From NCBI GenBank assembly GCA_002269645.1, contig NIVC01000932.1, positions 62,001-126,000 of the forward strand: DNA of 64,000 nucleotides, in the 5' to 3' direction. Origin of the DNA: Macrostomum lignano (lineage: Eukaryota). The first letter of the stretch is position 1. The number at the start of each line of letters is the position of its first letter. Made by a program: the position numbers and the translations under genes. Below, piece by piece: positions 1,415-45,196 of this stretch. Below the pieces are notes generated by a model, which did no database searches, was not told the DNA's origin, and saw only the letters and a list, made by a program, of their open reading frames with translations.

Positions 1415-4400
1415 ATGCTCCGCTGTGATGGGCGCGACAGACAGCAGCGGCTTGGCTCGCTTCGCATCCGGAGGTTTGCTTATCTTGTTTATGAGTACCT
1501 CATGGGCCTTTCTTGATGGCGCTAGGGATTTATTTGTTGGGGAAATACTTAGGGAGAGGGGCAGGGAGAGATTAAGGGAGGGGGCAGGGAGAGATTAAGG
1601 GAGGGGGTGAGAGATTAAGAGAGAAGGGCAGGGAGAGATTAAGAGAGAAGGGTAGGGAGAGATTAAGGGAGAGGGGCAGGGAGAGATTAAGGGAGAGGGG
1701 CAGGGAGAGATTAAGGGAGGGGTAGGGAGAGATTAAGGGAGAGGGGTGAGAGATTAAGGGAGAGGGGCAGGGAGAGATTAAGAGAGAAGGGTAGGGAGAG
1801 ATTAAGGGAGAGGGGCAGGGAGAGATTAAGAGAGAAGGGTAGGGAGAGATTAAGGGAGAGGGGCAGGGAGAGATTAAGGGAGAGGGGCAGGGAGAGATTA
1901 AGGGAGAGGGGCAGGGAGAGATTAAGGGAGAGGGCAGGGAGAGATTAAGGGAGAGGGGCAGGGAGAGATTAAGGGAGAGGGGCAGGGAGAGATTAAGAGA
2001 GAAGGGTAGGGAGAGATTAAGGGAGAGGGGCAGGGAGAGATTAAGGGAGAGGGGCAGGGAGAGATTAAGGGAGAGGGGCAGGGAGAGATTAAGGGAGAGG
2101 GGCAGGGAGAGATTAAGAGAGAAGGGTAGGGAGAGATTAAGGGAGAGGGGCAGGGAGAGATTAAGGGAGAGGGGCAGGGAGAGATTAAGGGAGAGGGGCA
2201 GGGAGAGATTAAGGGAGAGGGGCAGGGAGAGATTAAGGGAGAGGGGCAGGGAGAGATTAAGAGAGAAGGGTAGGGAGAGATTAAGGGAGAGGGGCAGGGA
2301 GAGATTAAGGGAGAGGGGCAGGGAGAGATTAAGGGAGAGGGGCAGGGAGAGATTAAGGGAGAGGGGCAGGGAGAGATTAAGAGAGAGGGGCAGGGAGAGA
2401 TTAAGAGAGAGGGGTAGGGAGAGATTAAGGGAGAGGTGCAGGGAGAGATTAAGGGAGAGGGGCAGGGAGAGATTAAGAGAGAGGGGCAGGGAAAGATTAA
2501 GGGAGGGGGGCAGGGAGAGATTAAGGGAGAGGGGCAGGGAGAGATTAAGGGAGAGGGGCAGGGAGAGATTAAGGGAGAGGGGCAGGGAGAGATTAAGGGA
2601 GAGGGGCAGGGAGAGATTAAGGGAGAGGGGCAGGGAGAGATTAAGGGAGAGGTGCAGGGAGAGATTAAGGGAGAGGGGCAGGGAGAGATTAAGGGAGAGG
2701 GGCAGGGAGAGATTAAGGGAGAGGGGCAGGGAGAGATTAAGGGAGAGGGGCAGGGAGAGATTAAGGGAGAGGGGCAGGGAGAGATTAAGAGAGAGGGGCA
2801 GGGAGAGATTAAGGGAGAGGGGCAGGGAGAGATTAAGAGAGAGGGGCAAGGAGAGGCAGGGAGGTGGCCGATGAAGCCCAGCCGGAGAGCAAATAGCGGA
2901 GATCAAAGAGCATTACCATAACATGAAAGCACACAGCTTTAGACTTGCTAACCTGTTCCGCTACTTAAACTCTACTCAAAATTGTTGGTGCTGAAGTGAT
3001 CAGCAAACATAATCTGGCCAATAGTTTCTCAGCATCCGCCGCCCCATCGCCCCGCCTGCCTGCAGGGCCAGTTCAATAAGTGGCGGCCTGGCAGGGCGAA
3101 GTCTGCTGCTGCTGCTGCTGCTGCTGCTGCTGCTGCTGCAATGCCAGGTAAGCAAGCGTGGGCGTGGCTTGCGGAGTCAGGAACGGACCAACTGTCGGTG
3201 GTTGCTTCAATTGACGGAAAATCAACGAGCCGCCCACGCCTTTCATGACTGACTTAGTTTTCTAGACTTTTAGTTTTCCCTATAGACTTAGGGAAACGAT
3301 GACCGGCCCCAGTGTGCACTAATGCACTAATACCGGTGAATCACTGCACTCGGATCCTGTGTACCTTTAATTAGTCATTTGCAAGTTTGGTTATGACATC
3401 CTCAGCGGGGTAAGGGTTGGTGCTGTTAACTTTTCTGGGGGGGGGGGAGGCGAGCGAGAGTGCAACGGGGACTGGGGACTCGGCTAAATTTTCCTTATTT
3501 TATTGGGGGCTTGCGGTAGCCGATGAAGGAAAGGAAGTTGACTAATCTACCGCGAACTAATTTAAAGCTCATTTTATGACAGCTGCCAGTCAAACTCCTG
3601 AGATAAAGGTGTGAGGATCTGTGAGAGTGTACCCAGCTACAGGTGTGAGGATCTGTGAGAGTGTTCCCAGCTACAGGTATGAGGATCTGTGAGAGTGTAC
3701 CCAGCTACAGATGTGAGGATCTGTGAGAGTGTACCCAGCTACAGGTGTGAGGATCTATGAGAGTGTACCCAGCTTCAGGTGTGAGGATCTGTGAGAGTGT
3801 ACCCAGCTACAGGTGTGAGGATCTGTGAGAGTGTACCCAGCTACAGGTGTGAGGATCTGTGAGAGTGTACCAAGCTACAGGTGTGAGGATCTGTGAGAGT
3901 GTACCCAGCTACAGGTGTGAGGATCTGTGAGAGTGTACCCAGCTACAGATGTGAGGATCTGTGAGAGTGTACCCAGCTACAGATGTGAGGATCTGTGAGA
4001 GTGTACCCAGCTACAGATGTGAGGATCTGTGAGAGTGTACCAAGCTACAGGTGTGAGAATCTGTGAGAGTGTACCAAGCTACAGGTGTGAGGATCTGTGA
4101 GAGTGTACCCAGCTACAGGTGTGAGGATCTGTGAGAGTGTACCCAGCTACAGGTGTGAGGATCTGTGAGAGTGTACCAAGCTACAGGTGTGAGGATCTGT
4201 GAGAGTGTACCCAGCTACAGGTGTGAGGATCTGTGAGAGTGTACCCAGCTACAGGTGTGAGGATCTGTGAGAGTGTACCCAGCTACAGATGTGAGGATCT
4301 GTGAGAGTGTACCCAGCTAAAGGTATGAGGATCTGTGAGAGTGTACCCATTCAGCTAAAGGTGTGAGGATCTTTGAGAGTGTACCCATTCAGCTAAAGGT

Positions 4401-43200: not shown

Positions 43201-45196
43201 AAATCGCTTAGCTGTGGAAATGGCAGCGCAGTATTGAGGCAGTATTTCTTTGGCGAACAATTGAAGGTCATGACAGTTTCTAATCAACCGACCACTTCTG
43301 TACAGCGGCCCTGACTTTCATAAGGCCTGTACACTCACTGTGCCTTGACTTGCTACCCAACCTGCAAACTAACTATTCCTACCTTGGCCCTAAAGTCGCC
43401 AGTAATCAGCACATTATCGATAGCCAAATCTTTGTGCAACACGGGCGGCTCCTGTTCATCTTGCAGACAGCGCATTGCTTGGCAGACGTCCAGCATGAAG
43501 GATTGGACCAGCCAGGGGAATCTGCTGGTCTCCAGGCCCTGACAGGTAGGAGGGCGAGCGGGATACTCGGTTTCACAGAATGAACTGATGGATCTACGGG
43601 TTGGTTTAATACTTGGGTTGGTGTGTACAGCTAGGGATTGTGTACAGCCAGGGATTGGTGTGTACAGCTACGGACTGATGTGTACAGCTAGGGATTGATG
43701 TGTACAGCTAGGGATTGATGTGTACAGCTAGGGATTGATGTGTACAGCTAGGGATTGATCTGTACAGCTAGGGATTGGTGTGTGTGTACAGCTAGGGATT
43801 GGTGTTTACAGCTAGGGATTGATGTGCACAGCTAGGAATTGATGTGTACAGCTAGGGATTGGTGTGTACAGCCAGGGATTGGTGTGTACAGCCAGGGATT
43901 AGTGTGTACAGCCAAGGATTGGTGTGTACAGCAAGGGATTGGTGTGTACAGCTAGGGATTGATGTGTACGCTAGGGATTGGTGTGTGTACATCTAGGGAT
44001 TGATCTGTACAGCTAGGGATTGATCTGTACAGCTAGGGATTGATGTGTACAGCTAGGGGTTGATCTGTACAGCTAGGGATTGATCTGTACAGCTAGGGAT
44101 TGATGTGTACAGCTAGGGGTTGATGTGTACAGCTAGGGATTGATGTATACACCTAGGGATTGGTGGGCACAGCTAGGGATTGAGGTGTACAGCTAGGGAT
44201 TGATGTGTACAGCTAGGGGTTTATCTGTACAGCTAGGGATTGATGTGTACAGCCAGGGATTGATGTGTACAGCCAGGGATTGATGTGTACAGCTAGGGAT
44301 TGATGTGTACAGCCAGGGATTGGCGTGTACAGCCAGGGATTGGTGTTTACAGCCAAGGATTCGTGTGTACAGCTAGGGATTGATGTGTGCAGCTAGGGAT
44401 TGGTGTGTACAGCTAGGGATTGATGTGTACAGCTAGGGATTGGTGTGTGTACAGCCAGGGATTGATGTATACAGCTAGGGATTGATGTGTACAGCTAGGG
44501 ATTGATGTATACACCTAGGGATTGGTGGGCACAGCTAGGGATTGAGGTGTACAGCTAGGGATTGATGATGTGTACAGCTAGGGATTGGTGATGTGTACAG
44601 CTAGGGATTGATGATGTGTACAGCTAGGGATTGGTGTGCACAGCTAGGGATTGATGGACTCTCCAGTGCACCAACTTACCGCCCGACTAAATCTATTAAG
44701 AAAGTTTCTGAGATCGCCAAAATCGCAGTGCTCCATCAGGTAGCCATTAAAAATATTGTTGCAGATGTACAGGCCGTGTACTTTTACAATATGACGCGAC
44801 TGATCGCTCAGCTTTTTTAGCAAAGTGATCTCTTTTTGAAGCTTTTTCAGAGCCCTGCAGGTAGAACAGTTTGTCATGAAGCCTTCATATAGATATTGCA
44901 ATTGTCAACTGAAATTCTGGATAGTGGCGAAAGCTTCCAAACTTACCAAACCTTGTCTGCAGACTCGGTGGTATTTCTAAGCATTTTGATGACACAATGA
45001 ATGCCCTGCCATTTGCATGAGTAAATATCCCCAAATGAACCACGAGCTAAAATGAATAAACAGAATTATGTTAATAAAGGTAAGTGTTTGTTAAAATTTG
45101 CAGGAAAATTTAACTCAATTGCTTGCCTAAAAATTCCTTTTCAGAAACTTGTTCGTCAGTGACAAAGGAGAGCTTTGATTCCTGTGCTGCAGCCAT
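40212..45196 (-). CDS. TKL-group kinase with C-terminal death domain (RIPK1-like architecture), 7 exons, about 510 aa
   Basis: Exons 45196-45127 (GC donor), 45046-44947 (ARGSFG...CVIK), 44854-44680 (KEITLL...LMEHCDFGDL), 43538-43383 (VLHKDLAIDNVLI), 43211-42888 (DFG...RPPE), 41425-40972 (PEERPTF plus linker), 40465-40212 (SWTRLRQALEL...TLKRLGESLKALNCHEAL, death-domain pattern). All phases consistent, 1533 nt. Confidence 0.85.
40548..40908. repeat. 28-bp minisatellite (gctggcccagcaactgaggatctgggag)
   Basis: Directly visible in the last intron of the kinase gene. Confidence 0.9.
41475..42790. repeat. 35-bp minisatellite (tagtgacctcagctgcaccataaacactcactcat), about 37 copies
   Basis: Directly visible, intronic. 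Confidence 0.95.
43618..44655. repeat. 20-bp minisatellite (gtgtacagctagggattgat), about 50 copies
   Basis: Directly visible, intronic. Confidence 0.95.

Follow-up and report, generated by a model that had tools for sequence, protein, structure and literature searches.

We report an analysis of a 64,000-nucleotide window (the whole stretch of DNA studied here) from Macrostomum lignano, assembly Mlig_3_7, in which genes are crowded with tandem arrays that are probably ordinary, but unusually abundant and unstable, minisatellites of the non-coding DNA of this animal. The analysis indicates that the long introns at this locus are long mainly through these unstable arrays, which differ widely among the three subgenomes. 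No new mutational mechanism is revealed, and the array that repeats a donor splice site is of a kind already known from human genes.

TRF detects some 27 arrays between positions 1548 and 44655 of the window, covering 21,470 of 43,108 bases (49.8%), and the tandem-repeat share of the locus lies between 31 and 50% across all of its copies. Simple and tandem repeats together make up 15% of Mlig_3_7 genome-wide (Wudarski et al. 2017, PMC5730564); since the assembly is the same, the arrays described here form part of that fraction. From 44656 to 64000 the array share is 4.5% (TRF), and this ten-fold lower density in the right third of the window was counted against the reading of the arrays as ordinary minisatellites. 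The first-pass annotation of this DNA had described nearly every long intron of its FGF-like, iGluR, CaMKK and kinase-DD genes as filled by its own array. The arrays are real (Table 1) but they are not intron-specific, because many lie outside any supported exon pair (1551-2855, 8386-9950, 20303-22196 and 31305-39156, none of the five arrays in the last of these being between supported exons). Several public gene predictions at the locus run through arrays.

Table 1. Tandem arrays of the window, with their gene context. Here and in the text '/' marks a splice junction.
Positions	Strand	Repeat	Setting	Basis
3607..5416	+	34-nt array (3607-4865) and 21-nt array (5145-5416)	either side of another putative-gene ORF	TRF
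5655..6153	+	33-nt x 15	unit includes GTGAGG GTGAGT and ~20 nt of the preceding open frame; junction putative	TRF
10023..10111	-	21-nt repeat	open frame of the predicted last iGluR exon; encodes (SPAIATE)n	TRF
10747..12156	-	13-nt x 108 (100% matches)	iGluR intron; starts at intron position +7, straight after GTGAGT (donor 12162-12157); ends 56 nt before acceptor (exon starts 10690)	TRF
12629..13100	-	42-nt x 11 minisatellite (11.3 copies, 92% matches)	iGluR gene, donor array	TRF
13471..13812	-	CT-rich, low complexity	iGluR intron; donor 14134, exon starts 13298; 322 and 172 nt from junctions	TRF
14718..15304	-	43-nt x 14	iGluR intron; 188 nt from donor 15492, 62 nt from acceptor (exon starts 14655)	TRF
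18319..19754	-	45-nt x 32 minisatellite (99% matches)	iGluR gene, acceptor array	TRF
23001..23908	+	16-nt x 57	ends 19 nt upstream of ATG 23927, the start of a small transmembrane-protein ORF	TRF
27673..29065	-	23-nt x 60	deep in CaMKK intron; 700 nt from donor 29765, 184 nt from acceptor (exon starts 27488)	TRF
31305..39156	.	five arrays: 15-nt, 9/11-nt, 23-nt, 21/42-nt x 62, 24-nt	between first CaMKK coding exon and kinase gene 3' end	
40548..40907	-	28-nt x 13	kinase gene intron; donor 40971, exon starts 40465	TRF
41476..42774	-	35-nt x 37	kinase gene intron; ends 50 nt before exon start 41425; donor CCG/GTGCGT at 42905, about 105-131 nt off	TRF
43618..44656	-	20-nt x 51	kinase/death-domain gene intron; 23 nt past donor 44679, 79 nt before acceptor (exon starts 43538)	TRF

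The locus exists in three collinear copies, on the contigs C932, C186 and C931, with flanks that are 94-100% identical. These near-identical copies fit the picture of three M. lignano subgenomes (Zadesenets et al. 2023, PMC10733133). Array lengths differ among the copies at least 2-fold in 18 of 28 cases and at least 5-fold in 6 of the 28, with a maximum of 28-fold: the 35-nt array of the kinase gene measures 259 and 329 nt in the sister copies, the 13-nt array of the iGluR gene spans just 51 nt in C186 and 64 nt in C931, and the 33-nt array has 169 nt in C186 against 1656 nt in C931. The 21-nt repeat in the predicted last iGluR exon also varies, from 89 nt in the window to 215 nt in both sisters; the added 6 x 21 nt leave the frame intact. 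At an unrelated CaMKK-paralog locus, a 32-nt intronic array has 3, 36 and 36 copies.

Three arrays had been said to straddle an exon-intron boundary, and for two of these, both in the iGluR gene, homology verifies the boundary. The gene model, of AMPA/kainate type, runs S1-M1-M3-S2-M4 collinear with GluK/GluA structures (residues 274-733, E 7e-98) and is 80-87% identical to M. lignano iGluRs. The first monomer of the 42-nt array comprises the last 17 nt of an iGluR exon and its donor, ..TGTACAACTTCTTCAAG/GTAAAT, with the exon end at 13084; this junction (AAG/GTAAAT at 13084/13083) is placed by the collinear alignment to kainate/AMPA receptors and by the paralog protein P0001. AAG/GTAAAT is kept in 10 of the 11 copies, and any downstream copy used as donor would lead to a stop after 6 codons (GTA AAT TGG ACT GAG GTG TGA). 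The same region, 472 nt long in the window, measures 58 nt in both C186 and C931, where the array is absent. This empty allele, ATGTACAACTTCTTCAAG/GT...(45 nt)...GTGTGCACCTTCATC, is an imperfect 17-20-nt direct repeat, found in both paralogs, and shows that the donor array grew out of a pre-existing imperfect direct repeat; the array's junctions are chimeras of both repeat copies, the exact exon end being retained in one interior unit. With head-to-tail monomers of 42 nt in an intron (roughly 10-100 nt being usual for the type), the exon end and authentic 5' splice site in the first monomer and a polymorphic copy number, the array is a boundary-spanning minisatellite.

The second verified case repeats an acceptor. 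Each 45-nt unit holds a branch-point-like CTGAC, a pyrimidine tract and CAG, the acceptor reading CTCTCCCAG/TCTGCAGAGCTGT, and CAGAGCTGT repeats, 45 nt apart, bound the array. The real acceptor, which follows a donor at 19831 (GAGA/GTGAGT), is assigned to the last unit because the frame meets a stop at 18354 and P0001 reads ..EAIC/RAVSS.. at this point; the exon starts at 18331 and 13 of its nucleotides belong to the unit. Splicing to a copy further upstream would give ..ICRAV-stop. There are 32 units in the window, 10 in C186 and 7 in C931. The prediction of identical decoy splice sites is borne out by two arrays, which present some 10 decoy donors that are intact and some 31 decoy acceptors. 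Every decoy would introduce a premature stop, so the protein must come from the site nearest the exon, the first donor or the last acceptor, and the annotated CDS of the paralog uses the last acceptor copy; from the reading frames and this one annotation we infer exon-proximal splice-site choice, as in human F7 IVS7.

An inverted iGluR paralog about 27 kb away carries the 45-nt acceptor array (the identical unit, x10), the 13-nt array and the 42-nt donor unit (5 units vs 1.4 and 1) at homologous introns. The 13-nt array region of the window matches the paralog's exon and array at 99.3% identity over 1395 nt. No two unit consensuses within the window are alike (blastn-short, E<=1e-4), as had been stated of units from different introns; beyond the window this breaks down, with the 45-nt, 13-nt and 42-nt units recurring in the paralog. 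When 17 units were searched together in the genome, the matches among the best 40 of 1249 candidates fell only on C932, C186, C931 and the paralog, with the 28-nt unit of 40548-40907 as the exception. The proposal that the arrays arose locally therefore holds for the most part, but those common to the inverted paralog were inherited or gene-converted and not always born in place.

Beyond the iGluR gene, the kinase junctions match an independent gene model (P0126, 100% identity), and the CaMKK gene is identified as such because it most resembles the CaMKK kinase domain, RP-rich insert included (human CaMKK2, E 7.5e-89, vs 6e-32 for the next kinase family). The 35-nt kinase unit also holds GTGAGT, but away from the junction. 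Among the near-junction arrays of the first-pass annotation, the starts at 12157 and 44655 and the end at 41475 stand, at the distances in Table 1. The third array proposed to straddle a junction, 5655-6153, belongs to a set of + strand ORFs (4866-6900) that had been labelled FGF-like. A PDB search to E<=10 gave no match to these ORFs, nor did 1.84 billion representative proteins at E<=0.001, and we have dropped the label, no similarity to FGF beta-trefoil proteins being found in either search. Since no homolog was detected, the junctions of this set, to which the arrays 3607-4865, 5145-5416, 5655-6153 and 7049-8080 are assigned, are only putative; the sole coding hint is that, of 18 substitutions between the copies, none affects codon position 2. 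A suggested fourth junction array, 23002-23905, adjoins a start codon, and nothing indicates an acceptor there.

The first-pass annotation had interpreted this anatomy as a mutational process focused on splice junctions, with arrays enriched there. We examined enrichment in 11 independent arrays, drawn from this one locus and a single 3-kb paralog locus, under a model in which a seed duplication is dropped at random into the introns' non-array length. Two arrays straddle a junction where 2.65 are expected among 11 (P(>=2)=0.80), or three against 3.15 once the putative + strand gene is added, and two lie within 25 nt of a donor where 1.45 are expected; the enrichment does not exceed chance. The introns involved are short: the array-free introns of the transcript-annotated paralog P0001 measure 68, 80, 86, 88, 94, 158... 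nt, and the non-array remainder of the array-bearing introns is 61-247 nt in 9 of 11. A junction-targeted process, in which breaks from co-transcriptional splicing or R-loops, for example, seed arrays and produce a genome-wide excess, is consistent with the two verified and one putative arrays that contain a junction, with the two verified arrays that start 6 and 23 nt past a donor, and with the several that end 50-80 nt before an acceptor. We nevertheless regard it as unlikely, and the counts make it unnecessary: they match what random placement predicts for short introns, many arrays are found outside supported introns, several intronic ones are 100-700 nt from the nearest junction, and the donor array was seeded by an old direct repeat rather than by a fresh junction event.

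Ordinary minisatellite turnover probably produced this anatomy. Replication slippage or unequal exchange between short pre-existing direct repeats would make an array grow, with the interval between the repeats becoming its unit. The native introns of M. lignano are very short, ~70-90 nt, so that an array expanding inside one must end only tens of bases from either junction. Selection may remove intrusion on the donor hexamer or on the ~50-80 nt branch-point/pyrimidine-tract zone, which would leave sharp array edges at +7 and about -50. In some cases the exon end itself is one copy of the seed repeat, and the unit then carries and multiplies the splice site. Arrays grow and shrink separately in each of the three subgenome copies, and those common to the two inverted iGluR paralogs would either have persisted or have passed from one to the other by gene conversion.

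It is improbable that the arrays, their copy numbers or the sharing with the paralog are artefacts of a noisy long-read assembly or of read mixing between paralogs or subgenomes. Mlig_3_7 was assembled with Canu from early PacBio reads, and some copy numbers could be wrong, as could the sharing of expanded arrays by the paralogs on C932; a 1-nt homopolymer deletion on C932 shortens the paralog's annotated protein by a frameshift, before the donor junction; the 13-nt array is completely uniform over its 108 copies; and only on C932 do both paralogs have expanded arrays. Against this, every array occurs in the same place and with the same unit in three separately assembled contigs, the arrays (0.1-2.6 kb) are shorter than PacBio reads, and the order of variant units differs in each copy.

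It seems to us quite unlikely that M. lignano tends genome-wide to amplify splice-site-bearing segments, whether by a mutational bias linked to junctions or because selection favours reiterated 3' splice sites, at which the 7 or more units of the acceptor array in every gene copy hint. If it did, hundreds of genes would have dozens of perfect decoy sites and the short-intron spliceosome would have to choose strictly by position (first donor, last acceptor), a rule that could be dissected by existing transgenesis.

More doubtful still is that selection maintains the junction arrays because they act in cis on splicing, for instance with U2AF recruited to a weak acceptor by the branch-point/pyrimidine-tract units. 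In none of the six gene copies (2 paralogs x 3 subgenomes) does the acceptor array have fewer than 7 units, where other arrays collapse to 1-5, and this could hint at maintenance rather than neutrality; yet the array still varies between 7 and 32 units, the donor and 13-nt arrays can be dispensed with, since the sister copies lack them wholly or almost wholly, and use of the decoys would give premature stops. The 45-nt unit is identical in both paralogs despite only ~80% protein identity in the adjoining exon, which gene conversion would explain, because the surrounding DNA tracts are 93-99% identical. An origin from transposable elements inserted into introns, whether introner-like or carrying the arrays, is very unlikely: the 28-nt unit is a dispersed family (at least 12 other contigs, 89-94% identity, genome search), a 240-nt dispersed repeat occurs at two places in the window and a 23-kb insertion with its own 53-nt arrays is found only in C186, but among the best 40 of 1249 candidates all other units tested match only the locus, its sister copies and the paralog, with none of the dispersal at many unrelated loci expected of transposons, and the empty allele shows in-place growth from local sequence, exon bases included.

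The passages of PMC5730564 and PMC10733133 that were searched do not describe long introns filled mainly by arrays, hypervariability among subgenomes or splice-site-bearing units. Arrays that vary among subgenomes matter for assembly, gene models, genotyping or transgene design in this animal. Among other invertebrates, the amphioxus Adh locus studied by Canestro and colleagues in 2002 reportedly has minisatellite-rich introns, with polymorphic minisatellites.

Splice-site sequence inside a tandem duplication also recalls the Rogers model of intron gain, in which an AGGT-containing exon segment is duplicated in tandem (PMC4974935, PMC2891723). Unlike in that model, no new intron arises: the paralog P0001 has introns at the same positions (88-110 nt after ..MYNFFK, another before ICRAV..) in which the array is missing or short, and intron gain was rejected on this ground.

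The closest known system is human. Boundary-spanning minisatellites are not undescribed, as had been supposed: in F7 IVS7 (37 bp x 5-9), IFI6/6-16 intron 2, CBS IVS13, LMNB2 and PDGF intron 4 the first monomer lies across the exon-intron boundary; F7, LMNB2 and PDGF use the authentic upstream donor alone, while in IFI6 and CBS two pseudo-sites further downstream are used as well (Borensztajn et al. 2006, PMC1557585). The donor array shares with the human F7 type its units of tens of bp, the exon end and donor in the first unit, identical downstream pseudo-donors and polymorphism of copy number. It differs in its host introns, of ~90 nt rather than kilobases, and in copy-number differences (1.4 vs 11 units; 7 vs 32 for the acceptor array) that exceed those of the human type. 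Its empty and 11-unit alleles provide a natural before-and-after pair for the birth of a boundary-spanning minisatellite from a short direct repeat. M. lignano also has an array repeating the acceptor, of which PMC1557585 contains no case, and its 7-32 perfect copies of branch point, pyrimidine tract and AG form an acceptor-side counterpart to the human donor arrays, in a transgenesis-capable animal whose ~90-nt introns make it a convenient system for studying how the spliceosome chooses among identical sites.

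Two arrays of the iGluR gene straddle an exon-intron junction, as the first-pass annotation had proposed, and carry the splice site within the repeated unit. The gene itself (- strand, ~10300-20300) is well supported, its spliced model being collinear with kainate/AMPA receptors (E 7e-98), with 80-87% identity to Macrostomum lignano proteins and no more than about 45% to everything else. The exon at the donor array ends in ATG TAC AAC TTC TTC AAG at 13084, followed by GTAAAT, and by its TRF extent the array reaches 17 nt into this exon, such that the 42-nt unit, GTAAATTGGACTGAGGTGCGAGCAGTGTGCACCTTCATCAAG, contains both these 17 nt and the donor. 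NSRIPLY opens the following exon, at 12397, and corresponds to FFK/KSKISTY in kainate receptors and FFK/NSKITVY in a paralog (the slash marks the junction). AAG/GTAAAT is intact in 10 of the 11 copies, and the reading frame, continued past the exon end into the first unit, runs for six codons before TGA. At the other end of an intron, the 45-nt acceptor-array unit, TTGATGCTGAGCAGTGTGCCTGACTCTCCCAGTCTGCAGAGCTGT, holds CTGAC, a pyrimidine run and AG. The sequence ..EAIC/ plus 11 residues of P0001, the protein of an inverted iGluR paralog, gives the acceptor CTCTCCCAG/TCTGCAG and places the exon start at 18331, inside the last unit; a longer exon is ruled out by an in-frame stop at 18354, and any copy further upstream would give ICRAV-stop.

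The two further cases that had been put forward did not survive. The third depends on a '+ strand FGF-like' gene (ORFs 4866-6900), an identity that is rejected, since no homolog was found in the PDB, even at E<=10, or among 1.84 billion representative proteins. Between three copies of the locus these ORFs differ by 18 substitutions, none (0/18) at codon position 2; this avoidance is the sole sign of coding and a hint only, as the 11:7 split between positions 1 and 3 is not a clean signature. For want of a homolog, the four arrays at 3607-8080 are treated as lying at unverified junctions. The fourth candidate, a 16-nt array at 23001-23908, stops 19 nt 5' of the ATG that opens a small membrane-protein ORF, and there is no sign of an acceptor there. 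The kinase array at 41476-42774, with GTGAGT in its unit, was also considered as a straddling case and rejected, the donor being CCG/GTGCGT about 105-131 nt upstream, as in the independent kinase gene model P0126. Three older UniRef predictions (P0002, P0003 and P0005) fuse the iGluR to - strand ORFs of the 'FGF-like' region; they are mis-spliced around arrays (window 4900-7100, 10300-20300) and unfit as gene models. The remaining genes are a CaMKK (- strand, 24800-30800, E 7.5e-89) and a TKL-type kinase (- strand, 40200-44900), for which the junctions set by hand are those of P0126 (504 aa, 100% identity).

Coordinates, lengths and junction distances of arrays and other features (positions without a contig name are those of the window)
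Feature	Position	Strand	Lengths in three locus copies (nt)	Distance from donor; acceptor (nt)
13-nt array, iGluR	10747-12156	-	1410, 51, 64	
42-nt donor array (x 11), iGluR	12629-13100	-	472, 58, 58	
45-nt acceptor array (x 32), iGluR	18319-19754	-	1436, 451, 311	
33-nt array	at 5655		499, 169, 1656	
21/42-nt array	at 35367		2616, 222, 1398	
Kinase array	43618-44656			23; 79
Kinase array	41476-42774			about 105-131; 50
Kinase array	40548-40907			64; 82
CaMKK array				700; 184
CaMKK-paralog 32-nt array	contigs C4521, C4504, C3686			about 130-150 from matched C-terminal exon
High-identity tracts	10985-12379, 18057-18790 vs C186:72081-72814, 77722-79116			
Tetranucleotide runs	7049-8080, 21178-22196; C186:70886-71335, 80231-80562			
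C-type-lectin-like ORF, single-exon	51769-52539	-		
GPCR-like ORF, single-exon	55519-56487	-		

These arrays belong to a dense population. Between 1548 and 44655 TRF finds ~27 arrays, each 77-2616 nt long with a period of 4-45 nt; after merging they make up 49.8% of this stretch versus 4.5% of 44656-64000. Compared with one another, the unit consensuses of the window show no resemblance, and with this census the bare observation of many arrays, each with its own unit, holds. Several array-rich stretches are without supported exons (1551-2855, 8386-9950, 20303-22196, 31305-39156 and the paralog flanks). The array-poor part is AT-richer and has single-exon genes, at a ten-fold lower array density. 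Simple and tandem repeats are reported to form 15% of the Mlig_3_7 genome, of which 180 Mb lies in duplicated blocks of at least 95% identity (Wudarski et al. 2017, PMC5730564), and the species, a neopolyploid, has three subgenomes (Zadesenets et al. 2023, PMC10733133); the passages searched in the latter paper say nothing on tandem repeats or introns.

The contigs C186 and C931 carry copies of the locus that are collinear with the window and 94-100% identical in unique segments. As the arrays are found in three separately assembled contigs they are real, and they are very unstable: measured between identical anchors, their lengths differ among the three copies by at least 2-fold in 18 of 28 and by at least 5-fold in six of 28. 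At a separate CaMKK-paralog locus a 32-nt intronic array numbers 3 copies in one sister contig and 36 in each of the other two, and the homologous intron of the window CaMKK has no array. C186 alone has a 23-kb insertion (C186:119315-142451) at the (TAGTAGA)n array (window 20303-20643), made up of repeated modules, about three in number, that each contain 2-3.4 kb of tandem 53-nt units, and a 178-nt satellite at 48061-48564 has 2.8 copies in the window versus about 45 (8 kb) in C931:28123-36189. The predicted last iGluR exon contains, in its open frame, a 21-nt repeat (10023-10111) that encodes (SPAIATE)n and has six more units, with the frame preserved, in each sister copy; it is likely a coding VNTR.

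The sister copies also preserve what appears to be the origin of the donor array. In C186 and C931 the donor site is array-free and reads ..ATGTACAACTTCTTCAAG/GTAAATTGGACTGACAGGTGTGAGCAGTGTGCACCTTCATCCTTTATTTG, with an imperfect direct repeat formed by the exon end TGTACAACTTCTTC and an intronic TGTGCACCTTCATC 45 nt downstream. The unit boundaries of the donor array are chimeras of both repeat copies (..CACCTTCATC-AAG/GTAAAT..), as slippage or unequal exchange between the two would yield, and one interior unit keeps the exact exon end TGTACAACTTCTTCAAG. The proto-repeat is present in the paralog too, as GTGTGCACCTTCATCAATGT in the C931 copy and partly deleted in C186, and a decayed junction-like copy, CTCTTCAAGGTTAATCAG, lies ~100 nt deeper in all copies of the window gene; the seed is therefore old, and the array has expanded and collapsed repeatedly. 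The acceptor array likewise has CAGAGCTGT at both edges, one copy lying in the intron and the other at the exon start at a spacing of 45 nt, and its first unit is diverged.

The further claim, of a separate origin for every array within its own intron, does not hold in general. P0001 (BOX15_Mlig000674g1, 937 aa) is not the product of a C186 allele of the window gene; its 16 exons map exactly on C186:71426-80226, an inverted paralog whose 3' end and that of the window gene are ~27 kb apart. In all three copies of this paralog the homologous exon is preceded by the 45-nt unit (45/45 identical, x10), the annotated CDS splicing to the last acceptor copy. The paralog also has roughly 48-90 copies of the 13-nt unit past the homologous donor, as well as two further arrays of its own; its array-free introns measure about 68, 80, 86, 88, 94, 158, 236, 347, 516, 726 and 917 nt. 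The pair is a DNA mosaic, with tracts of 93-99% identity around the arrays and the M3 exon and only 46-86% protein identity in the other exons, which suggests interlocus gene conversion, probably ongoing and possibly array-seeded. The 42-nt donor array is expanded in both paralogs on C932, the contig of the window (C932:62001-126000), and only there (11 and 5 units), and a variant unit, AAGCTAAATTGG, is common to the two; cross-assembly of the paralogs may be the source of this C932 sharing. Under gene conversion or cross-assembly alike, the sharing of the 45-nt, 13-nt and 42-nt arrays means that an own-intron origin is not general. Donor choice is not readable from P0122, the annotated C932 paralog protein, as a CCCC-to-CCC homopolymer deletion truncates it before the donor junction. 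This one-base, frame-shifting deletion lies in exon 13 (C932:42850-43086, outside the window), and the protein in the public annotation, BOX15_Mlig000674g5, is cut to 673 aa; the frameshift reflects an assembly error or else marks a pseudogene on the C932 haplotype. Long, recurrent tetranucleotide runs, (GTCT/CTGT)n x 83-258 and (AACT)n x 255, are a feature of the region, with (CTGT)n directly 5' of the paralog's first exon and again directly past its stop codon.

Matches listed for a composite query of 17 units fell only on C932, C186, C931 and paralog positions, except for the 28-nt unit of 40548-40907, which at least 12 other contigs also carry (89-94% identity); as scoring covered only the best 40 of 1249 candidate places, the other units are likely, rather than proven, to be rare. 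A dispersed, SINE- or MITE-like repeat of ~240 nt lies at 6198-6438 and about 16676-17019, and in the iGluR paralog it occupies the corresponding intron, with dozens of contigs among the matches listed (83-88% identity) and >2500 first-look candidates genome-wide.

A mutational process focused on splice junctions, as first proposed, is not needed. For 11 independent arrays in introns of homology-supported genes, we modelled a seed duplication of unit length p that could fall with equal chance anywhere in its intron, each intron being taken at its observed non-array length. Junction overlaps are at random expectation (2.65 expected vs 2 observed, P(>=2)=0.80), 1.45 arrays are expected vs 2 observed to start within 25 nt of a donor, and if the unverified ORF gene is included, with its two arrays, 3.15 overlaps are expected vs 3 observed. 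The non-array remainders of these introns have a median of 191 nt (61-247 nt in 9 of the 11) and are similar in size to array-free introns, with a median of 158 nt; with abundant arrays in such very short introns, proximity to junctions is to be expected. The 13-nt array begins at intron +7, past GTGAGT at 12162, and stops short of the acceptor by 56 nt; such sharp edges, at +7 and about -50 to -80, would fit selection that keeps the donor hexamer and the branch-point/pyrimidine zone intact.

The arrays and the two splice-site-bearing units are thus real. A limited literature search found no description of the pattern in M. lignano and no equivalent of the reiterated acceptor; human genes already provide published examples of the general layout. 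What is left of interest is the unusually clear birth record of a junction array, the acceptor-side example, and how far unstable arrays set intron length and differ between M. lignano subgenomes. In the human F7 gene the IVS7 minisatellite has 5-9 copies of 37 bp (Borensztajn et al. 2006, PMC1557585), the first monomer comprising the last 4 bp of exon 7 and 33 bp of intron, and further boundary-spanning minisatellites occur in IFI6 (6-16), CBS IVS13, LMNB2 and PDGF intron 4 (PMC1557585). The pseudo-donors are functional yet silent because a 5'-to-3' scanning-like process picks the most upstream site (PMC1557585). In every structural respect the iGluR donor array matches this F7 IVS7-type class.
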